Shown: piece by piece, positions 14,701 through 62,500 of the stretch
How positions within the stretch are numbered: position 1 is the stretch's first letter
Layout: each line of letters opens with the position of its first letter
NCBI GenBank assembly: GCA_977030845.1
Contig: OZ365111.1
Coordinates: 6,882,001 to 6,946,000 of the forward strand
Direction: 5' to 3'
DNA length: 64,000 bases
DNA from: Fimbriosthenelais zetlandica
Lineage: Eukaryota
Position numbers and translations under genes: made by a program
The notes under the pieces: generated by a model
Told to the model about the DNA's origin: nothing
What the model saw: only the letters and a program-made list of their open reading frames with translations
Database searches by the model: none

Positions 14701-17542
14701 CACTTTTTAAAGCCTTGTAGGACCATGCAGCTCTATGTACCTCATGTAATGTTGAGGGATACTGCATGTAAAATGCTAAAAGATATTAGCATAAATAAGT
14801 CTGAACTTCAAAATCAAATGTCAGAGTCAGAGAGTAAATCTTTCAGGAAATTTTATCGCAATAACCTTATCCATGTCTCTCTATAAACTGAGCGAGATGG
14901 AAATTTAAACAAAAAAGAACGGTAACTTAGCAGATAGAGGGGGAGAGAGAGAGAGGGAGAGAGAAAGACAGGTATAGTGGTGACCAGAGGAGAGCTTGGT
15001 GACACGATTACAATAGGTACCCTGGAGCTATACACGAGAGGGCCTCGACACGGGGCAAAGGGCCCTCCAAAGGCCCTCACCAATGCCCTCACTGCTTATA
15101 CTGAGGGCACCAGCGAGGGGTAGACTCTAAACATGGAGTGTCAATCTGACTAGGGGTCTGATAGGGGGAGATAGTGCTGTTGTAGTAAGGCCAAAGGAGT
15201 GAACGGATGGGCAAGTAAGGCTGCAGGGCCATATCCCTCTATGTGTCTGATAGGCTTTGCTGCATGGCATTCCCTCCCATTGTATAACCATAAAAGCATT
15301 GTCGTGCAACCCAACCAATATAGTCGTATTCAAGAGCCATTATGTATTTTAGGAAATAGAATTATTTTTGAGTTTGAGTTGTTCATCATCACTTCCAAGT
15401 GATATTTAGGTATGAACATTTTGAAGAACAGAGAAGTTCACTGAACACCCTAAAGATTGAGGCACACATTTGGTTTGTGCGAACGGTGGTCGTTCTTTTC
15501 TCAGGACTACACATTCTTACAGGTTAATGCCAGTGGGACTATAGAAACCTTTTCTTCCACCAATTTCACAGTATGAATCAACTGATATCACTGCCATTGA
15601 ACTTACACAAACATAGGATTAAACTCCTAATTTATCACACCTTGTCAACACAAACTTTGTGGGTCCTGATCCGCACCCAGTTTGCTGGACATGGCTGCAT
15701 TATGCTGTCAAAAAGCCGTGTACACTAAAGCCCTAAAATATTGACAGAGTTAAAGACCGGGCCATTTTGACTGAGACAATAGGGACTGTGCCAACTTCCC
15801 ACCTCCACACAGGGTCACACAATAGCTTGTATGGTCTGGTCTTGTACAGCCTGAGAGCATTAGAGGTGTTAAAAAGGTGTTAAAATTAAGTAGCACACCT
15901 GATTCAGATCAATTCGAATACTCGAACGTGCTGGGCAGCTCAGATTTTATCCCTCCGTCCCTTTTCTAAACTTTTCTACAGCAGAATAGAAGGAAACTTT
16001 TAGTATTGCAATTTAAGACATTTAATCTATTAATATGATAAATGTTTTGCATTCTCAGGGTTGGCTGGGTCAGGGTAGGATTGGGCCACTTGAAAATTTA
16101 ATACATTAAGAAATCCAAAAGCCCAAAAGTGGATGGGAAAGAAAAAAGTCAGCTAAGCCCTCTCCTCATACCTTTTCTTTCCAAGAATCAACTAATTTAA
16201 ATTGGTAATAGATCGAGATATCTCAGAATAAATATAGCAGAATTATATATGTTTTAAAAACATTTGGTGTCATCCAAAGGTAACATAAATCTTGAAATTC
16301 TCAGTGAGGGATATTATTTTTTTCCGAAGTATTTCCGAAGATCGTTGAAAGTCTTTGGTGTAAGGGGAGGAGGCCAAAAGGTGATCTGGTCTTGCTTTGA
16401 GTGGAAATGCCAATAGGTAATGGAGATTTAATCTTCTAATGTGTAGCCCCCTTCATTCCTATCATAATACCTTGTAGAGTGGTGGCTGGAGGACACTTAG
16501 TTCTCCGCTAAAATTGCTCTTCAATATACTATGACATGCTGTGAGAATATGTTCAAGACTTCTATGGGGAGGTAGACCACAACAGACTAATCTCTCATTT
16601 GGACTCAAGTTGTCCTTAACTCGAGTCAATTGATATTTTAATCGATGGCAGTTCCATATGGGGTCCGTGTGTATACATGTCATTGACACTTGAACTATGG
16701 AAGTTCAAGATTAAGTTTACCTTCTCATATAAGAGTTTAATTATTTCATTTCTCCTCAGGGAGAAATGAAATCAAGTTTTTCACCGCGTTTCTGTACACT
16801 ATTATTATTCTTTTTATTATTATTATTTCATTTCTCCTCAGGGAGAAATGAAATCAAGTTTTTCACCGCGTTTCTGTACACTATTATTATTATTATTATT
16901 ATTATTATTCTTATTATTGTTGTAGTTAGACAAATTTTAAATCGGCTTAAAATCGACTTTCTAATAGAGACAGGAATCTGGTCTTTGGCACACAGGTAGA
17001 GCATGGTCAGAAGATGTCAAATGTGGCAGGATTGACTTTCATGTCATGTCATGTCATGTCATAAAATGACGTCAAACTTGCATAACTGGAAAAATGTATT
17101 GGCTGTTTTTTTCAGAAATATTGCCAACCAAAAATCATGTCACTGGTATCAGGTAACATGTACTTGATGCCCTATCATTTGGTACCATCATTTGACCTGT
17201 GGCCTAATTACTGTCTGTTAATTAGCTAATTAACATGAAATGCAATCACTTAAATGCTATCTACTCCTAGCCTGGTTATTCCAGGTGAATGAAAATTGCA
17301 TTATGGACCCTTAAGAGGCTTCTTGTCATCATGATTAGTTTGATTTTTTAATTGACGTCATAATGACGTCATAATTGACGTCTTAATGACGTCATGGCAT
17401 CTTTGGGTAAAAAATGGAAAAAATGCTTCAAACATGTGAGGGACGGTCATATATGTCCAAATATAAAATATTGTGACAATCCATATTTTAATAAGGGTGT
17501 TAATTAAAAAAAAAAAAAAATTTCAATATGGGAAAAAACAAA

Positions 17543-17623
17543 GCCAGCAGCAGGATTCGAACCCACACTTGCAACTACCATTGGATCACAAGACCAACAG
17601 CTTATCCATTGGGCCATGGAGAC
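17543..17623 (-). pseudogene. tRNA-Leu(TAA)-derived pseudogene, anticodon loop CT-TGT-GA
   Basis: Reverse complement is GTCTCCATGGCCCAATGGATAAGCTGTTGGTCTTGTGATCCAATGGTAGTTGCAAGTGTGGGTTCGAATCCTGCTGCTGGC: A box, B box GGTTCGAATCC, TTGG..TCCAA anticodon stem typical of animal Leu-TAA, long variable arm; acceptor stem broken. Confidence 0.75.
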
Positions 17624-18315
17624 GGCACACATAAGCATGGCTTGTAGCCCAGTACCAATTGATCTGTATGTGATGCATGAGTAGTAAGTAAGGGGTGGTT
17701 TGGTTCATGATATAGATTGTGAACTTTGACAGTCATTCAATTACTTGTGACTCCTATAAATTAATGGGAGTTGGGAAAGTTGGGGAAAATAAATCCTTAG
17801 ATCTGGCTTGGACATTATTGGCCATAAATATCACAGATTACCATGGTTACTATTTTCAATTGGCTTAAAATCGACTTTCTACTAGAGACAGGATTCTGGT
17901 TTTGGGTACACAGGTAAGGCATGGTCAGAAGAGGTCAAATGTGGGAGGTTTGACTTTCATATCATGTCATGTCATGTCATAAAATGATGTAAAATCAGGC
18001 ATTTAACTGGGCAAATGTATTGGCCGTTTTTTCATAAATCTGGCCTTCGAAAAATCATGTCACTGGTTATTCCAGGTGAATGGCAAGTTGCATTATGGAC
18101 CCTTTAGAGGCTTCTTGTCATCATGATTTTTTAATTGACGTCATAATGACATCTTAATGATGTCATGGCATCTTTTGGTAAAAAGTGGATAAAAATGCTT
18201 CAAACATGTGAGGGATGGTCAGATAAGTCCAAATATAAAATATTGTGAAAATCCATATTTTATTAAGGGTGTTCATTAAAAATAAATTTTTAAAAAAAAT
18301 ATGGGAAAAAAACAA

Positions 18316-18396
18316 GCCAACAGCAGGATTCGAACCCACACTTGCAACCACCATTGGATCTCAAGACCAAGTCATTATACCTCTAGGCTACAAGCC
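18316..18396 (-). pseudogene. tRNA-Leu(TAA)-derived pseudogene, anticodon loop CT-TGA-GA
   Basis: Same 3' half (TTGGTCTTGAGATCCAATGG...GGTTCGAATCC) with a diverged 5' half (TAGCCTAGAGG A box). Confidence 0.7.
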
Positions 18397-18411
18397 ATCC
18401 TTGTTTGTGGA

Positions 18412-18493
18412 GTCTTGATGGCCGAGTGGTATTAGGTGTTGGTCTTGAGATCCAATGGTGGTTGCAAGTGTGTGTTCGAATCCTGCTGTTGGC
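18412..18493 (+). pseudogene. tRNA-Leu(TAA)-derived pseudogene, anticodon loop CT-TGA-GA (inverted copy)
   Basis: ATGGCCGAGTGGTATTAGGTGTTGGTCTTGAGATCCAATGG closely resembles animal tRNA-Leu(TAA) ATGGCCGAGTGGTTAAGGCGTTGGACTTAAGATCCAATGG (recalled); followed by a T-run. Confidence 0.8.
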
Positions 18494-18826
18494 TTGGTTT
18501 TTTCCCATATTTTTTTTTAATTTCTTTTTTAATTAACCCCCTCAATAAAATATGGATTGTCACAATGGATTGTCCAGGCAAATGACAAGGTGCATATATG
18601 GACTCTTTAGAGGCTTCTTGTCATCATGATGTTTTCAATTTTTTAATTGACGTCATAATTGACATCATAATGACATCATGGCATCTTTGGGTAAAAAATG
18701 GAAAAAATGCTTCACATATGTGAGGGATGGACAAATACATCCAAATATAAAATATTGTGACAATCCATATTTTATTAAGGGTGTTAATTAAAAACAAAAA
18801 ATTTAAATTATCGGCAACAAAAAAAA

Positions 18827-18909
18827 GCCAACAGCAGGATTCGAACCCACACTTGCAACTACCATTGGATCTCAAGACCAAGACCTTAACCCTCTGAGCC
18901 ATGCTAGAC
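18827..18909 (-). pseudogene. tRNA-Leu(TAA)-derived pseudogene, loop CT-TGA-GA
   Basis: A box TGGCTCAGAGG, B box GGTTCGAATCC, downstream T-run. Confidence 0.72.
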
Positions 18910-19708
18910 ACATGCATGGCTTGTAGCCCACTGATCTATGGTGGATGAGAAGTAAGTCAGGGTGGTTTGGGCTCAAGATTTCAATTCCATATGGTTCCAC
19001 TGGTTTTCCTACCCCCATTAACATGACCACAAGTGAAATGAAATATCTGTAATTGCAGCAATTACATGATGACTAGTTATTATTGTTGTAGTTAGACAAA
19101 TTTTCAATTGGCTTAAAATCGACTTTCTAATAGAGACAGGAATCTGGTCTTTGGCACACAGGTAGAGCATGGTCAGAAGATGTCAAATGTGGCAGGATTG
19201 ACTTTCATGTCATGTCATGTCATGTCATAAAATGACGTCAAACTTGCTTAACTGGAAAAATGTATTGGCTGTTTTTTTCAGAAATATTGCCAACCAAAAA
19301 TCATGTCACTGGTATCAGGTAACATGTACTTGATGCCCTATCATTTGGTACCATCATTTGACCTGTGGCCTAATTACTGTCTGTTAATTAGCTAATTAAC
19401 ATGAAATGCAATCACTTAAATGCTATCTACTCCTAGCCTGGTTATTCCAGGTGAATGAAAAGTTGCATTATGGCCCTTTAGAGGCTTCTTGTCATCATGA
19501 TTAGTTTGATTTTTTAATTGACGTCATAATGACGTCATAATTGACGTCTTAACGACGTCATGGCATCTTTGGGTAAAAAATGGAAAAAATGCTTCAAACA
19601 TGTGAGGGACGGTCATATATGTCCAAATATAAAATATTGTGACAATCCATATTTTAATAAGGGTGTTAATTAAAAAAAAAAAAAAATTTCAATATGGGAA
19701 AAAACAAA

Positions 19709-19789
19709 GCCAGCAGCAGGATTCGAACCCACACTTGCAACTACCATTGGATCACAAGACCAACAGCTTATCCATTGGGCCATGGAGAC
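19709..19789 (-). pseudogene. tRNA-Leu-derived pseudogene, loop CT-TGT-GA
   Basis: Identical to the 17543-17623 module. Confidence 0.75.
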
Positions 19790-20480
19790 GGCACACATAA
19801 GCATGGCTTGTAGCCCAGTACCAATTGATCTGTATGTGATGCATGAGTAGTAAGTAAGGGGTGGTTTGGTTCATGATATAGATTGTGAACTTTGACAGTC
19901 ATTCAATGACTTGTGACTCCTATAAATTAATGGGAGTTGGGAAAGTTGGGGAAAATAAATCCTTAGATCTGGCTTGGACATTATTGGCCATAAATATCAC
20001 AGATTACCATGGTTACTATTTTCAATTGGCTTAAAATCGACTTTCTACTAGAGACAGGATTCTGGTTTTGGGTACACAGGTAAGGCATGGTCAGAAGAGG
20101 TCAAATGTGGGAGGTTTGACTTTCATATCATGTCATGTCATGTCATAAAATGATGTAAAATCAGGCATTTAACTGGGCAAATGTATTGGCCGTTTTTTCA
20201 TAAATCTGGCCTTCGAAAAATCATGTCACTGGTTATTCCAGGTGAATGGCAAGTTGCATTATGGACCCTTTAGAGGCTTCTTGTCATCATGATTTTTTAA
20301 TTGACGTCATAATAACATCTTAATGACGTCATGGCATCTTTTGGTAAAAAGTGGATAAAAATGCTTCAAACATGTGAGGGATGGTCATATATGTCCAAAT
20401 ATAAAATATTGTGACAATCCATATTTTAATAAGGGTGTTAATTAAAAAAAAAAAAAAATTTCAATATGGGAAAAAACAAA

Positions 20481-20561
20481 GCCAGCAGCAGGATTCGAAC
20501 CCACACTTGCAACTACCATTGGATCACAAGACCAACAGCTTATCCATTGGGCCATGGAGAC
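20481..20561 (-). pseudogene. tRNA-Leu-derived pseudogene, loop CT-TGT-GA
   Basis: Identical to the 17543-17623 module; part of the 772-bp repeat. Confidence 0.75.
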
Positions 20562-21252
20562 GGCACACATAAGCATGGCTTGTAGCCCAGTACCAATTGA
20601 TCTGTATGTGATGCATGAGTAGTAAGTAAGGGGTGGTTTGGTTCATGATATAGATTGTGAACTTTGACAGTCATTCAATGACTTGTGACTCCTATAAATT
20701 AATGGGAGTTGGGAAAGTTGGGGAAAATAAATCCTTAGATCTGGCTTGGACATTATTGGCCATAAATATCACAGATTACCATGGTTACTATTTTCAATTG
20801 GCTTAAAATCGACTTTCTACTAGAGACAGGATTCTGGTTTTGGGTACACAGGTAAGGCATGGTCAGAAGAGGTCAAATGTGGGAGGTTTGACTTTCATAT
20901 CATGTCATGTCATGTCATAAAATGATGTAAAATCAGGCATTTAACTGGGCAAATGTATTGGCCGTTTTTTCATAAATCTGGCCTTCGAAAAATCATGTCA
21001 CTGGTTATTCCAGGTGAATGGCAAGTTGCATTATGGACCCTTTAGAGGCTTCTTGTCATCATGATTTTTTAATTGACGTCATAATAACATCTTAATGACG
21101 TCATGGCATCTTTTGGTAAAAAGTGGATAAAAATGCTTCAAACATGTGAGGGATGGTCATATATGTCCAAATATAAAATATTGTGACAATCCATATTTTA
21201 ATAAGGGTGTTAATTAAAAAAAAAAAAAAATTTCAATATGGGAAAAAACAAA

Positions 21253-21333
21253 GCCAGCAGCAGGATTCGAACCCACACTTGCAACTACCATTGGATCACA
21301 AGACCAACAGCTTATCCATTGGGCCATGGAGAC
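21253..21333 (-). pseudogene. tRNA-Leu-derived pseudogene, loop CT-TGT-GA
   Basis: Identical to the 17543-17623 module; part of the 772-bp repeat. Confidence 0.75.
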
Positions 21334-22026
21334 GGCACACATAAGCATGGCTTGTAGCCCAGTACCAATTGATCTGTATGTGATGCATGAGTAGTAAGTA
21401 AGGGGTGGTTTGGTTCATGATATAGATTGTGAACTTTGACAGTCATTCAATGACTTGTGACTCCTATAAATTAATGGGAGTTGGGAAAGTTGGGGAAAAT
21501 AAATCCTTAGATCTGGCTTGGACATTATTGGCCATAAATATCACAGATTACCATGGTTACTATTTTCAATTGGCTTAAAATCGACTTTCTACTAGAGACA
21601 GGATTCTGGTTTTGGGTACACAGGTAAGGCATGGTCAGAAGAGGTCAAATGTGGGAGGTTTGACTTTCATATCATGTCATGTCATGTCATAAAATGATGT
21701 AAAATCAGGCATTTAACTGGGCAAATGTATTGGCCGTTTTTTTCATAAATCTGGCCTTCGAAAAATCATGTCACTGGTTATTCCAGGTGAATGGCAAGTT
21801 GCATTATGGACCCTTTAGAGGCTTCTTGTCATCATGATTTTTTAATTGACGTCATAATAACATCTTAATGACGTCATGGCATCTTTTGGTAAAAAGTGGA
21901 TAAAAATGCTTCAAACATGTGAGGGATGGTCAGATAAGTCCAAATATAAAATATTGTGAAAATCCATATTTTATTAAGGGTGTTCATTAAAAATAAATTT
22001 AAAAAAAAAATATGGGAAAAAAACAA

Positions 22027-22107
22027 GCCAACAGCAGGATTCGAACCCACACTTGCAACCACCATTGGATCTCAAGACCAAGTCATTATACCTCTAGGCT
22101 ACAAGCC
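22027..22107 (-). pseudogene. tRNA-Leu-derived pseudogene, loop CT-TGA-GA
   Basis: Matches the 18316-18396 module. Confidence 0.7.
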
Positions 22108-22126
22108 ATGCAGTTTGTGGAGTCTT

Positions 22127-22201
22127 GTCTTGATGGCCGAGTGGTGTTGGTCTTGAGATCCAATGGTGGTTGCACGTGTGTGTTCAAATCCTGCTGTTGG
22201 C
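22127..22201 (+). pseudogene. tRNA-Leu-derived pseudogene (inverted copy; D-arm deletion, B box changed to TTCAAA)
   Basis: Matches 18412-18493 apart from a short deletion and substitutions. Confidence 0.65.
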
Positions 22202-22532
22202 TTGGTTTTTTCCCATTTTTTTTTTTTATTTTTTTTTAATTAACCCTCAATAAAATATGGATTGTCACAATGGATTGTCCAGGCAAATGACAAGGTGCAT
22301 ATATGGACTCTTTAGAGGCTTCTTGTCATCATGATGTTTTCAATTTTTTAATTGATGTCATAATTGACATCATAATGATGTCATGGCATCTTTGGGTAAA
22401 AAATAGAAAAAATGCTTCACACATGTGAGGGATGGACAAATACATCCAAATATAAAATATTGTGAAAATCCATATTTTATTAAGGGTGTTCATTAAAAAT
22501 AAATTTTTAAAAAAAATATGGGAAAAAAACAA

Positions 22533-22613
22533 GCCAACAGCAGGATTCGAACCCACACTTGCAACCACCATTGGATCTCAAGACCAAGTCATTATACCTC
22601 TAGGCTACAAGCC
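22533..22613 (-). pseudogene. tRNA-Leu-derived pseudogene, loop CT-TGA-GA
   Basis: Matches the 18316-18396 module. Confidence 0.7.
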
Positions 22614-22628
22614 ATGCTTGTTTGTGGA

Positions 22629-22710
22629 GTCTTGATGGCCGAGTGGTATTAGGTGTTGGTCTTGAGATCCAATGGTGGTTGCAAGTGTGTGTTCGAATCC
22701 TGCTGTTGGC
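22629..22710 (+). pseudogene. tRNA-Leu-derived pseudogene, loop CT-TGA-GA (inverted copy)
   Basis: Identical to 18412-18493. Confidence 0.8.
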
Positions 22711-23042
22711 TTGGTTTTTTCCCATATTTTTTTTTATTTTTTTTTTAATTAACCCCCTCAATAAAATATGGATTGTCACAATGGATTGTCTAGGCAAATG
22801 ACAAGGTGCATATATGGACTCTTTAGAGGCTTCTTGTCATCATGATGTTTTCAATTTTTTAATTGACGTCATAATTGACATCATAATGAAGTCATGGCAT
22901 CTTTGGGTAAAAAATGGAAAAAATGCTTCACACATGTGAGGGATGGACAAATACATCCAAATATAAAATATTGTGACAATCCATATTTTATTAAGGGTGT
23001 TAATTAAAAACAAAAAATTTAAATTATCGGCAACAAAAAAAA

Positions 23043-23125
23043 GCCAACAGCAGGATTCGAACCCACACTTGCAACTACCATTGGATCTCAAGACCAAGAC
23101 CTTAACCCTCTGAGCCATGCTAGAC
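23043..23125 (-). pseudogene. tRNA-Leu-derived pseudogene, loop CT-TGA-GA
   Basis: Identical to 18827-18909. Confidence 0.72.
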
Positions 23126-25180
23126 ACATGCATGGCTTGTAGCCCACTGATCTATGGTGGATGAGAAGTAAGTCAGGGTGGTTTGGGCTCAAGATTTCAA
23201 TTCCATATGGTTCCACTGGTTTTCCTACCCCCATTAACATGACCACAAGTGAAATGAAATATCTGTAATTGCAGCAATTACATGATGACTAGTTGTCCTT
23301 AATGCCACATAAATATCTTCAGATCAAGAACTTCCATTGAAGAGAATTAGCCGTTTCATGGCCATGTATCAACGGTTCATGTATTATGTGTATATGAACT
23401 CCAACTTCGGGATACACAGGATTATTTGATAATTGACTAAAGTTCATTAATTTATCAATATTAATATGAAATAGTTATGAAATGTAAAGTATACGAGATA
23501 GTATCATGAAATATCATACAACAGTTGAAAAAATATGATACAAAATGACAATGAATTTGATTCATAAAGACAGGCATGCCAGTCGACCAAGGCAAAAAAA
23601 ACTGAAAATATTTGGAGGAACCAAACCAGCATACCATAAGAAAATAAAACTATTTCTGGGCCTTTCAGGATGTAAAAGGTAAATTTTTCCCAGATGATGA
23701 AAAAACATGACTGTCATCCCTGAAAGAACAATTTTAAAGGCCCTTTCCCATTAAGAATCTGATTTGAGTGCATAGCTTGTATTTCTACGCGTTATCATGA
23801 GAGACCCAGATCTCTTAACCTCACCTCATGCTATCACTGATAAGAAGCGAGTGAAGACAATACTTTGAGCAGTGAAAAACAAGCAATGACTGCCCAGAAT
23901 GCTGATCCTTCTTATCACCCCCCACTCCTTATCAGATAAGATCCTGTCTCAAGTAGGGGAGAGGAAGACATGGACTGTCTTCTCAGTGACAGGGTTTTGT
24001 GTAAAGTATGTGTTGATTGGATATGAGCTCATATATTATAAGTCAAGGTTGGGACCTTGTCAGTGCTAATCAGTGCTAATCAGGGCGCCTTCTTCTCATG
24101 TGCGGAGATGGCTTATCTCCTATAATTGTTCTGTTGTTAGCAGCAGTACTATACATGCACCTGTCCACCAAGGATCTTATCTTAATAACTTCTTGTTTTT
24201 CTTTAAACAGCTTTTCCTCCAGGTCAAGGAGGCGTCCCTGCACACCACTTTATACTCGAGGAAATCTCAGTAATTTAAAAATGTTTTGCCCCCAACTGGG
24301 AGCGAATTAGATAGTAACTACATGGCAACAAAGATATTCCACCAGATATGGACTTTTCTTTGTATGAGTTGGCTAGAATTCTTTTGCATGATCATTGATG
24401 GTAATTGGCAATACAGTGGTTAAGTATGATATGATGGGATATAGAGAAAAATCTCAGGATCTAATTAGAAAAAAATAAATTTTTTTGGAGGGGGGGGGGG
24501 GGGGGGGGGAGTATGGAGGGGGAATAAATCAACCTTTTTTGGTCTACAGATATCTTGGTATTCAAATATGCAATGTCATAAATCCTAGTGAAAAACATAC
24601 TTTTCCTAGATATGGATATGGCCCCCCACAATCAACTTATCTAGCATTCGGATGGACCTTACGACCTCTCACACAATGAGCTACAGACTAAATACCTGCG
24701 CAATAATCTAAGCACACAAATATTTGCCGGGTTACAGACATATTAGCCTGCCATATTACATGATAAAAGATTCCGATTAAAATTTTTATCAATCACGGGG
24801 GGTCGATATCTGATCAGTCACCGAATATCAATGAGTCTAATATTTTTAAGGGGAGTTTGGAGGCTTGCCTTTAAACGAACTTTAAAACAGAAACGATCGC
24901 AGCGCCACCGCCGCCACTGAGCTGCTCTCTCTCTCTGACCCGGCACGGGTGGTCAGTTGACCTCATTAACTCCATGCAACAACAGCAGTGACTAATTATC
25001 TCTTGCCTCCACCGTCCCCATCCACCTCCTAACAATACAGGTGGTTATTTTTTGTGGAAGCGGCATTTCAGAGCTATTAATTTTAAACGTGTTAAGTTAA
25101 GTTTAAACTTGCAGTATAATACATCGAACATTCATTGACACTACCTTATATGCATTATTGATAAAACCTGATTCATTTAC

Positions 25181-59554: not shown

Positions 59555-62500
59555 TCAGTCAAAATATTCATCCTCATCTTCATCCTCGTCGAAGGGATTT
59601 GTTGATTTCTTTTCCTTATCAAATGGATTGGACATATTTGCTGCCTTTTGTTCTATTTTGCCGGGCATGCCAGTGGGAGCTGATCCAGTTGTAGCCAGCA
59701 CTGGGCTTCCAGAAGATACCTGTTTCACAAGGTTAGCAGCTGCGGATTTTCTCAATGCTTCACTTGCCTGAGGTGGAATTTCCTTAAGAGGAGGTGGTTC
59801 CTTGGATTTCGGGGCTGCTACCACTGCAGGCCCAGTGTCAGTCCCTGCAGATTTTGTCTTGTCACTTTTGGTCTTGGGAGAAACTGTTGGTGATTTTTTG
59901 TCAGCACTATCTCTGTAGTCTTTGTCTCGATCATAATCCCTTGAGGGTTCTCTCCTATACTCTCTGTCTCTTTCCCGTGGATAGTCCCTGTCCTTATGTC
60001 TATCTCTGTCTCTGTCATAATCTCTGCCTCTGTCCCTGTCATAATCTCTATCCCTATCCCTGTCATAATCCCTGTCTCTATCTCTATCCCTGTCTCTATT
60101 TCTATCGTAATCCCCATCTCTCTCATAATCTCTGTCTCTGCTGGATCCTCTCCGTCTGTCCCTATCCTCATACCTGTCCTCCCTCCTATATCTCTCCCTA
60201 TCATAATCCTCCCTGGGTCTCTCTTCCCTCCCTCTCTCATACTCATCTCTGTCGCGGTCATATCTGGGACTTTCTGGTCGTGTCTCATATCTCTCCTCAC
60301 TATCCGTCTTTTCATAACGTTGTTTTTTCCGCCCGGTACGGTCCAGGAATTGATCAGGCCGTTGGTCTCCGTCGCTGCGGTTTGATCCGCTCCTGGGCCG
60401 GCTCAGTGAGTCCCTCTGGCGGGGCTGGACGGTAGCGGGGAGGGTATGGGTAGCGTGGTACCCCGGGGGAGCACCATCTTTCCCCACCTGGACGTGATGG
60501 GGAACCATGCTGGTCCTAGGGGTACCAGTTTGTACATACGCATCTTTACGTCTCGTCCGCGTGACACATTTCGATTCTTTGAATGATTTGGTGAAGTAAA
60601 ATCCACCCGCCACGATTAAAAAGAGACCTGTGGAAAGAATGGAGAATAAAATCATCTCATTGGTAAATTACCCATGTATACCTATTCCAGCTAGCTCCAA
60701 CATCAGCTAGCTCAAAAAAATTGATTTCATTTCGTGTAGCTTACATTTAATGATTTAATGATCATATTTCTCAACGAATCATACTTTTGTAATATACTTT
60801 TTTGTTGAGTTTCGATCAATTGCCCTTAGCCTCATGGTATTGATAGCCATGTTATTGGGAAATATCTAAATAATATTAATTAACTTTTAAAGGGATTCTA
60901 GCATGAGTCATTTCCGAAATTTGAAGTTGGTCCGAGCGCGCGCCTGCCACCTAGCGTGATTTTTTTGAATTGCAGTAGCCTACCTCGCCTGGATATTTTA
61001 AAGATTGAAAAATAAAATAATTATCTTTAGTTTGCTCACCCACTACGCATGTTTCAACAGTGAAAAGTGCCTGCAGAAAACATGGAACAGCAAAGAGAAC
61101 ATAAAGAACAGTTTTCCTCCAGTTGTCAATCCAGACAAGGAACCTCCAGAACGTGCAGCAACAGCCATCCTGACGCCTATAAAAACAAAATTAATGTTCA
61201 TTTTAATTTAAACGCAGTTTATATAACGTGTCAAAAGGGAGTTATTAACATACCGAATATAAATAAATTGTACATGTAGGTTTAAGTGACAGGGAAAAAA
61301 CATGAAAATTGTATTTTTATAATTATAATTATCACAATTACACAGTTAAATTCACTTTTAACCCTTTCGGGGCGGGCAATGATTTAAGGCTTCTAATCAG
61401 TGGACGGCGACTACATTAATGGTGCCATGCTATAGGACGGCGAATGTATTTATGCATTTTTATCTGTTTTTGATCAATATAGAATGGGAAATTTGCAATA
61501 TTTTGGTGAAAATCCTGCCTCAAAATTCCGAGTAGAAGCAGAGATACAGCCCTCTAGATTTGGTAATCGCAACTTTGTTCTGTAATAGGGATTTCCCTGG
61601 GGTATGAGATATTTAAACGAAAAAGGAGCCTAAAGTTGGGAAATATAATTTTAGGAAAATGAATAATATATAATGTAATCTTTCACTATTTCCTTATTTC
61701 TGATCCAATTTCTACAAAATAAATTTTCTTCGGAAGGTCAAATTATTTTCTTCGGGAATGTAATGATATTTCAGTATTTCACTTTTTGACCGTTTCCATG
61801 GTAACCATCAAATGCACGAACCTTTTATTTTACTGAAAATCCTGTTGCCATGGCAACGAAAATCCCCAATTATATAAATGATTTTTTTGGCAAAAAAATA
61901 ATATCTTTGAATTGTCTGGAAAAAATCATTGAAGGGGCTTTTTTAAGATGTTTTTTGTCACTTTTTTTTTTTTTTCAGTTTTCCCGTAAATATTATGATA
62001 AAGGCTGCTAAAATTTTGTAAAATTTCTTGAATTTCATAGAGCCATAGCTTTTTGAAGGAATATGGCACTGATATACTAGCTACCTTGTTAGATTGAGTG
62101 CATCAAGCTGAATACAAATATAGCTGATATTAGAGTGGAAGAAATGTTTGTAAGGGTTACTCAGTGTGTCAAAAACATGACAAAATGCATAACGGTGAAT
62201 GCATTTATGCATTCCCCGTCCATAGCGGCGGATGCATTTATGCATTCACCGTCCATAGCGGCGGATGCATTTATGCATTCGTCGCCGCGATAGGGTTAAA
62301 AATACAAGTTTTATTTATTTGAGAATAAGGCCTATATATTATGTCAGTAGGTCAGGTGGTTAGTACCGTAGTTAGTTCAAACCATTAAGTTTTTCTTGAG
62401 CAATTAGGCAATTTATCTATAATAATATTAATTTAATATGAACAGAGATGGAAAGACTATATCGTGATGTGCAGGAAGGTGAATTTAGCTCGTCATAAAT

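Follow-up and report, generated by a model that had tools for sequence, protein, structure and literature searches.

What kind of element occupies positions 16741-23294 of the Fimbriosthenelais zetlandica sequence considered here, and how did it come to carry a series of segments that resemble tRNA genes? The window, by which we mean the whole 64-kb stretch that was analyzed (contig OZ365111.1, positions 6,882,001 to 6,946,000 of the forward strand), contains between these coordinates a segment that opens with TTATTTC (16741), closes with CTAGTT (23294) and joins tRNA-like modules to the ends of a HINE-type rolling-circle element. A first-pass annotation had read it as one HINE with captured tRNA-Leu genes as its internal array. 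The outer boundaries of that reading stand, and so does its architecture, with subterminal inverted repeats (subTIRs), hairpin, microsatellite, internal repeats and 3' stem-loop all present, but the segment is not a single unit, because it has two heads and two tails rather than one of each. It is a nested pair, in which a young 2.26-kb HINE lies inside the (TAT)n microsatellite of an older, already expanded copy. We consider it likely that a 23-24 kb Helentron, or a closer relative of it, mobilized these elements, and that the modules came from the ends of that Helentron. The two copies are laid out as follows.

16741-16822, plus strand: 5' head of the older outer copy, with its boundary T, the subTIR (16742-16752), the hairpin (16743-16772) and the left part of the (TAT)n (16800-16822).
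16823-19078, plus strand: the young inner copy, a complete HINE of 2,256 bp, which splits the (TAT)n of the outer copy.
16823-16881, plus strand: head of the inner copy, with (TAT)12 (16882-16918), the core GTTAGACAAA (16925-16934) and a four-module body after it.
19035-19045: 3' subTIR of the inner copy, followed by its stem-loop (19049-19065) and terminus (19066-19078).
19079-23294, plus strand: rest of the older outer copy, with the microsatellite's right part (from 19079), the core (19091-19100) and an eight-module body.
23251-23261: 3' subTIR of the outer copy, followed by its stem-loop (23265-23281) and terminus (23282-23294).

The 82-bp head is present at 16741-16822 and again from 16823, each time with a (TAT)n microsatellite after it. 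Its 5' subTIR, the 11-nt TATTTCATTTC at 16742-16752, supplies the 5' arm of a hairpin (16743-16772) that has a perfect 13-bp stem, a loop of 4 nt and a predicted DNA fold (-12.3 kcal/mol, z -5.9) matched in stability by none of 200 shuffled sequences. The exact complement of TATTTCATTTC recurs at 19035-19045 and 23251-23261, where the 3' repeat stops 33 nt short of the 3' terminus. The 3' stem-loop (GTAATTG-CAG-CAATTAC, a 7-bp stem) lies 13 nt from the end; its fold energy, taken on its own, is weak and not significant (z -1.5), and its sequence is identical in the autonomous Helentron described below. Between these ends lie central repeats, monomers of 330-770 bp that each carry one tRNA-like module and whose variants are 81-87% alike. 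The outer body has been enlarged by local tandem duplication, with three copies of a 772-bp A-type repeat (~19438-21774) and two of a ~510-bp B/C pair (~21769-22774), and it is this duplication that accounts for the eight modules of the outer copy. No open reading frame (ORF) of at least 150 aa is found within the element (16741-23294). Long ORFs are few in the window overall; the sole one, of 366 aa, lies on the minus strand at 59555-60655, 36 kb from the element.

The nesting is evident from both the arrangement and the relationships of the two copies. Excising the inner copy in silico reunites two microsatellite halves into a normal (TAT)n. The inner copy is on average 99.4%, and at most 99.9%, identical to 29 copies elsewhere, compared with 96-98% to the outer copy that adjoins it on both sides, and the outer copy is in turn 96.1-97.9% identical to copies elsewhere. 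Neighbors that are not each other's closest relatives argue against an origin by local duplication.

The pair belongs to a large and young family. The 2.16-kb body occurs at 98-100% identity at more than 70 loci, so the feature is not a product of chance. Pattern counts across the 447-Mb assembly give 176 major tails and 39 minor ones, which read ACTGTGATGACTAGTT where the major type has ACATGATGACTAGTT, at least 215 in all, and 183 heads at no more than two mismatches. Among the loci fetched for comparison, 30 standard units measure 2153-2163 bp, show a mean pairwise identity of 99.37% and carry four modules each without exception (30/30), so that termini and modules co-occur elsewhere in the genome just as they do here. 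A 47-nt module block has 919 matches genome-wide at no more than three mismatches. The HINE family is thus young and recently active, and older family copies at 93-96% identity exist alongside it. Two loci with seemingly orphan modules, absent from the head and tail lists (C1:40.81 Mb and C1:31.53 Mb), were considered as a separate short interspersed element (SINE) and proved to be such older copies, 93-96% identical and with slightly diverged ends. One more copy of this HINE, single and complete, is found at C11:6952327-6954577, on the minus strand, about 6 kb past the right end of the window.

A coding partner that shares both ends of this family, of the kind the first-pass annotation had suggested looking for, is present in the same genome. 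There are 30 matches to the Helitron Rep domain, which fall into about six families, several of them with open frames of 2,200-4,260 codons. Two tails with one mismatch, reading GAAATGGAAT rather than GAAATGAAAT, came out of the search for minor tails, at C30:1077229 and at C31:656197; each lies 13.75 kb downstream of a family-B Rep domain on the same strand. A third copy is found on C27, where 13.9 kb separate Rep from the tail downstream of it; the 3' flanks of the three copies differ. Homology between the C30 and C31 copies begins exactly at a variant of the head, TTATTCCATTTCTCC-TCAG-GGAGAAATGGAAT, which gives lengths of 24.3 kb (C30) and 23.1 kb (C31) for the Helentron. Its Pfam domains stand in the order DUF6570, Helitron_like_N (with the HIH motif), PIF1 and Exo_endo_phos, the last being AP-endonuclease-like.

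The ends of this Helentron can be aligned directly with those of the HINE. The 1.2 kb after the head is about 90% identical and the last 0.8 kb 84-93%, and at the extreme termini the match rises to 57/60 over the first 60 nt (C30) and 59/60 over the last 60 nt (C27). The subTIR agrees at 10 of 11 positions, with TTTC changed to TTCC, and a complementary substitution is found in each of the sequences that pair with it, the hairpin arm and the 3' repeat, which leaves all three pairings of the Helentron ends intact, with a 13-bp stem of -13.1 kcal/mol. Such compensation across three sites, the subTIR at either end and the hairpin arm, argues that these pairings matter. Each noncoding end of the Helentron also contains one tRNA-like module, antisense to the gene; the 5' one is called by ARAGORN in both C30 and C31, and the other lies just before the tail. 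From this alignment the HINE looks like an internal-deletion derivative of the Helentron that has kept the module-bearing ends, the direction of descent being the part of this statement that we infer. With modules already in both Helentron ends, the HINE most likely inherited them, and no capture of host genes need be supposed.

The family-B Helentron is itself unusual in size. Its stop-free frame reaches 4,260 codons (C27:6884265-6896594, with counterparts in the C30 and C31 copies). Ahead of DUF6570 and Rep, a stretch of roughly 3,000 codons has no counterpart in Pfam except for a weak, partial SBDS_domain_II, and this giant N-terminal part contains only three short in-frame tandem repeats (51-60 bp). 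A family-C Helentron on C40 was also considered as the partner and set aside, since no HINE-like tail occurs in the 5 kb downstream of it, despite the presence of Rep, PIF1 and endonuclease domains in one frame. That frame, at C40:656810-667403, is continuous over at least 1,902 codons, and downstream of it lie repeated short GC-richer blocks with GTAAGT-like ends that look like a duplicated run of small exons.

No target-site duplication is seen when the elements insert, the 5' and 3' flanks being unrelated in more than 20 copies, and TTATTTC mostly has an A ahead of it (by hand count, in about 22 of 25 outer heads). One locus with a direct tail-to-head junction reads CTAGTTATTTC, from which two of the four terminal T residues must be host-derived. 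The flanks of the 30 copies gave no paralogous empty site within the fetched DNA. One such site, paralogous rather than allelic, was later obtained through the C31 Helentron, which sits between the TAT run of an F1 head and the head of another family: three uninterrupted composite elements carry ACAC(TAT)4TAGCC at the junction that this Helentron occupies. Taking TATTCC...CTAGT out of the filled site gives back (TAT)3TAGCC, which corresponds to insertion at T^T with nothing duplicated and agrees with the TT target of Helentrons and HINEs (PMC4067079). Insertion takes place between the two T residues of a (mostly A)TT site. Because ATT is offered at each TAT repeat, the element's own microsatellite would be a preferred landing site, and heads would come to cluster ahead of bodies and tails.

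This expectation can be compared with the genome at large. We surveyed 74 head/tail clusters on the six contigs for which both head and tail lists are complete. Simple head-tail pairs make up 40 of them, and 22 are multi-copy. Heads and tails are equal in number in 10 of these 22 (2/2 in six, 3/3 in two, 4/4 in one and 6/6 in one), and most of the others are off by one. Within clusters the heads are grouped at the 5' side, ahead of the tails, and major and minor tail subtypes are mixed in single clusters. Repeated insertion into the family's own (TAT)n is the simplest account of these clusters.

Several observations weigh against the reading of the locus as a self-nested pair driven by this Helentron. 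Helentron and HINE are just 84-93% identical outside the extreme ends, and their subTIRs differ at one position in 11. With identity in this range rather than above 95%, the driver of a burst whose products are 99.4% identical may be a closer relative, which was not found. Genome pattern searches for the precise HINE termini, head or tail, next to non-HINE sequence returned no match. The C30 reading frame shifts inside the helicase region, where an intron or a defect is possible, and the C27 copy is interrupted or truncated on its 5' side; no head was found within 4 kb upstream of its giant ORF, where another repeat interrupts the copy. In the cluster survey, 12 of the 22 multi-copy clusters have unequal numbers of heads and tails, and nesting alone fails for those with two heads and one tail.

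Taken together, we nevertheless favor the following course of events. The HINE would have been born by loss of the coding interior of a Helentron whose own noncoding ends already included the modules, followed by multiplication of the module-bearing monomers. In the older copy at this locus, the central repeats expanded by local tandem duplication first, after which the young copy jumped into its (TAT)n. The mobilizer would most likely have been the 23-24 kb Helentron of the same genome or a closer relative, acting through a giant protein that joins Rep (HUH), a PIF1-type helicase and an AP-endonuclease-like domain. The ends would probably be recognized through the 11-nt subTIR, the 5' hairpin that pairs this repeat with its nearby complement, and the 3' stem-loop.

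The modules themselves number exactly 12 by motif searches and fall into four variants, as the first-pass annotation had counted them. Variant A has four copies, B three, C three and D two; nine of the 12 lie on the minus strand, the other three on the plus strand.

17542-17623, minus strand: variant A module, anticodon TGT (also at 19708-19789, 20480-20561 and 21252-21333); ARAGORN Thr(tgt), Rfam tRNA 23.2 bits; A box TGGCCCAATGG and B box GGTTCGAATCC at a spacing of 53 nt, with a T run after.
18314-18397, minus strand: variant B module, anticodon TGA (also at ~22025-22108 and ~22531-22614); acceptor stem largely unpaired; not called by ARAGORN or Rfam.
18411-18495, plus strand: variant C module, anticodon TGA (other copies end at 22203 and 22712); perfect A box TGGCCGAGTGG, B box 10/11; not called by ARAGORN or Rfam.
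18825-18909, minus strand: variant D module, anticodon TGA, the most tRNA-like of the four (also at 23041-23125); ARAGORN Ser(tga), Rfam tRNA 27.9 bits.

Variants B and C stand head-to-head. Every module has an A-box-like motif at 10-11 of 11 positions, and the B box is equally well kept (10-11/11) except in one C copy (~22147, ending at 22203), where it is more degenerate and the D arm carries a deletion. The boxes lie 53-54 nt apart, as they do in the true Leu and Ser genes of this genome, and a stretch of six or more T begins 1-3 nt past the 3' end of each module. On these sequence features the layout corresponds to a type-2 RNA polymerase III (Pol III) unit. As tRNA genes the modules fall short: the Rfam scores of variants A and D both lie under the tRNA gathering threshold of 29 bits, and by hand count the acceptor stem pairs at only 2-6 of 7 positions and the 31-39 pair is broken. 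A real tRNA gene cluster was accordingly excluded, by the ARAGORN calls together with the sub-threshold Rfam scores.

The identification of the modules as tRNA-Leu(TAA) does not survive. The anticodon is TGA in eight of the 12 and TGT in four, TAA occurs in none, and ARAGORN gives Ser(tga) or Thr(tgt). The four variants are 73-78% identical to the genome's tRNA-Leu(TAA) and 75-80% to its tRNA-Ser(TGA), in effect equally close to both. The other characters divide in the same way: a single transition separates the anticodon loop CTTGAGA from that of either parent, the T stem is Leu-like in its 5' strand and Ser-like in its 3' strand, and the variable arm agrees with both at 10 of 16-17 positions (T stem and variable arm by hand count), so that the identities, T arm, variable arm and anticodon loop each split evenly, with neither Leu(TAA) nor Ser(TGA) favored as the parent. 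A safe description from these sequence characters is that the modules descend from a tRNA with a long variable arm, of the Ser(UGA)/Leu(UAA) kind, and are old and degenerate. They share with genuine tRNA-Ser(UGA) and tRNA-Leu(UAA) the long variable arm, the box spacing and the GGTTCGAA T-loop, and their anticodon arm is one or two bases off; they differ in overall sequence (73-80% identity), in the broken last pair of the anticodon stem, in an acceptor that is partly or largely unpaired, in anticodons TGA or TGT with G37, and in their sub-threshold Rfam scores. The picture of captured tRNA-Leu genes thus gives way to one of old modules, already resident in both ends of the Helentron.

Could the modules nevertheless be working Pol III units or TFIIIC sites, kept for the benefit of the Helentron as barriers, insulators or a source of small RNAs? 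This would add to the account given above rather than compete with it, and we regard it as a tentative possibility. tRNA genes and tRNA-derived SINEs are able to act as barriers in yeast and mammals. The A-box-like motif is retained at 10-11/11 in all variants, those of the autonomous element included, and persists although no segment of the monomers has diverged more than the 5' third of the tRNA part (42-62% identity among variants A, B and D); the B box at 10/11 or better in nearly all copies, the spacing and the prompt terminator point the same way, as does the presence in the autonomous element of one module per noncoding end, both in the same orientation. Against this, the cloverleaf has not been kept, as the weak acceptor pairing and the absence of calls for variants B and C indicate. 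From the anticodon arm to the T arm the variants are 96-98% identical, which is no better than the ~150 nt further downstream (83-98%), and homogenization of the repeats could be responsible instead of selection; the copies are also too young, at 99.4% identity, to show constraint. The pattern fits conserved DNA signals rather than an RNA fold, and homogenization of repeats would look alike. We therefore consider it possible, if on the doubtful side, that Pol III or TFIIIC activity of the modules is real, and give a somewhat lower rating to a role for the element itself. The first-pass suggestion that the family disperses Pol III units holds to the extent that tRNA-like units provided with both promoter boxes and a terminator have indeed been spread (the 919 matches). 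A stronger version, in which the Helentron lineage would keep Pol III/TFIIIC sites in both ends as functional parts and the HINE would have seeded some 900 TFIIIC sites very quickly, seems to us unlikely on what the sequences offer.

Nesting can also be set against a second explanation, in which the two-unit arrangement arose by local tandem duplication or by rolling-circle read-through past the 3' end. Helitron-type elements do form tandem arrays, some clusters have one head and two tails or two heads and one tail, and the 772-bp and ~510-bp internal repeats of the outer copy were clearly duplicated locally. Read-through predicts the order head-body-tail-head-body-tail, whereas here and in most clusters the heads are grouped 5'; both tail subtypes are mixed within clusters; the half-microsatellites on either side of the inner unit join into a normal (TAT)n; and that unit is nearer to copies on other chromosomes than to its neighbor. 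Together these points make tandem duplication or read-through improbable as the origin of the pair, and insertion of one copy into the microsatellite of another remains our preferred explanation.

The heads show further variation of their own. Loci with two heads but a single body and tail include C1:14850000-14852341, C11:39314903-39317215 and C19:10940111-10946641; in such clusters either the ~70-88 bp head and microsatellite duplicate alone, or there are head-only mini-insertions. Elsewhere the F1 head with its (TAT)n precedes quite different sequence (e.g. C1:32324360-32324860, C11:27178150-27178660 and C10:27286195-27286705). After the F1 head come, at some loci, one to five tandem heads of a second type, with the hairpin CCTTTTCCCC-TGAAA-GGGGGAAAAGG and a TATT microsatellite, and at others a third head type with a 17-bp hairpin (CAAGCTAGAACCGGACT...). 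The heads look modular and chainable, probably through insertion into microsatellites or as composite families.

A tRNA-like head with A and B boxes is the hallmark of a SINE, a unit that begins with this head and goes on to a body read through by Pol III and a LINE-related or A-rich tail, between target-site duplications. On the strength of that resemblance, and of SINE-derived satellites reported in molluscs (PMC11121367), one might suppose a tRNA-derived SINE, a SINE-derived satellite or a real tRNA cluster merely lying between HINE-like sequences, but we find this very hard to credit, because the modules always travel with the same head and tail, four to each standard unit, the mobile unit has HINE ends and makes no target duplication, the modules are internal and mostly antisense and are followed at once by a terminator, so that a SINE-type read-through transcript is not expected, their scores fall below the tRNA threshold with unpaired acceptor stems in two variants, and the same modules occur in a Rep- and helicase-encoding DNA transposon, within its noncoding ends.

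Two other sequence features of the element deserve mention. The GTTAGACAAA that follows the microsatellite is common to the tRNA-bearing HINE, the autonomous Helentron and other head families, and may be a conserved core comparable to that of DINE-1. The second feature is a set of clustered palindromes, found by motif search.

17349-17395, no strand assigned: cluster of TGACGTCA (CRE/ATF-type) palindromes, with sites 11-12 bp apart.
Near 18117-18166, 18644-18679, 19515-19561, 22349-22384 and 22860-22895, no strand assigned: other TGACGTCA clusters.

Each monomer has one such cluster, located some 150 bp downstream of its tRNA-like module when read in the orientation of the latter. The element contains 16 perfect TGACGTCA sites where base composition predicts 0.08, a comparison in which the repeat copies are not independent, and the other 57 kb of the window contain one. 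Another head family has a comparable cluster (positions 395-430 of C10:27286195-27286705). These palindromes could be putative host bZIP sites or putative binding sites for a protein of the element.

The findings have several implications. A linked HINE and Helentron pair in which the non-autonomous family is very young (99.4% identity) is rare, and it makes the rules by which Helentrons recognize their ends testable. Self-insertion into the microsatellite shows how head clusters and pseudo-tandem arrays can arise, which bears on the satellite-like arrays seeded by Helentrons. With 919 tRNA-like units bearing Pol III promoter and terminator signals in a 447-Mb genome, the family will add false entries to tRNA annotation; among the 12 modules in the window, half are already taken for tRNA genes by ARAGORN. 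If TFIIIC binds the modules, chromatin boundaries near many genes could be affected, and if TFIIIC sites were functional parts of the Helentron, the family would offer a natural system for the rewiring of chromatin boundaries by a DNA transposon, with barriers around a giant gene, or small RNAs, as possible uses.

How does this system compare with those already known? In HINEs the subTIRs are about 11-15 nt long, the 5' one 2-4 nt from its end and the 3' one tens of nucleotides from the 3' end, while the order Rep-helicase-endonuclease defines Helentrons (Thomas et al. 2014, PMC4067079); an inverted repeat complementary to the 5' subTIR, followed by a microsatellite, is the DINE-1/Cg_HINE type (PMC4067079; Vojvoda Zeljko et al. 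2020, PMC7492417). The present element has all of these hallmarks, including subTIRs, a pairing inverted repeat, a microsatellite, central repeats, a TT target, a Rep-helicase-endonuclease partner and a palindrome that, at 13 nt, falls within the expected 8-35 nt from the 3' terminus; the exception is that the subTIR of the partner, at 10/11, misses the strict rule of 11-nt identity by one base. It differs from Cg_HINE of the Pacific oyster, whose central repeats are 140-180 bp satellite-like monomers and for which an autonomous partner could not be linked (PMC7492417), in its 330-770 bp monomers, each with a tRNA-like module, A box, B box and terminator, in having a linked partner, and in heads that are modular and chainable with those of other families. 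Its subTIR, stem-loop and core are absent from the supplementary sequence files of PMC4067079 and PMC7492417.

The partner likewise resembles other Helentrons in the succession Helitron_like_N, PIF1 and Exo_endo_phos with DUF6570 upstream, in its subTIRs and 3' stem-loop and in its T^T target, and departs from them in its very large size (23-24 kb), in an open frame of up to 4,260 codons and in the tRNA-like module within each noncoding end. In the full-text literature searched, we found no description of tRNA modules in a Helentron, a HINE or any other rolling-circle element, in keeping with what the first-pass annotation had supposed for HINEs. DNA transposons with promoters derived from small-RNA genes appear to be undescribed in the searchable literature, and this may be a first case.

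The nearest parallel is found in retrotransposons. The TRIMp3 elements (Helenus, Ajax and Cassandra) are non-autonomous retrotransposons of the long terminal repeat (LTR) class whose LTRs contain Pol III promoter sequence derived from tRNA or 5S genes; they depend on reverse transcription and have LTRs, a primer-binding site and target duplications of 4-5 bp (Kojima 2024, PMC10886601). Like them, the elements described here are carriers other than SINEs that hold Pol III boxes derived from small-RNA genes in their terminal regions and disperse them as interspersed tRNA-like copies, from which a working tRNA is unlikely. In contrast to TRIMp3, however, the carrier here is a rolling-circle DNA transposon, and its modules are present in the autonomous element as well and have been multiplied as internal tandem repeats.

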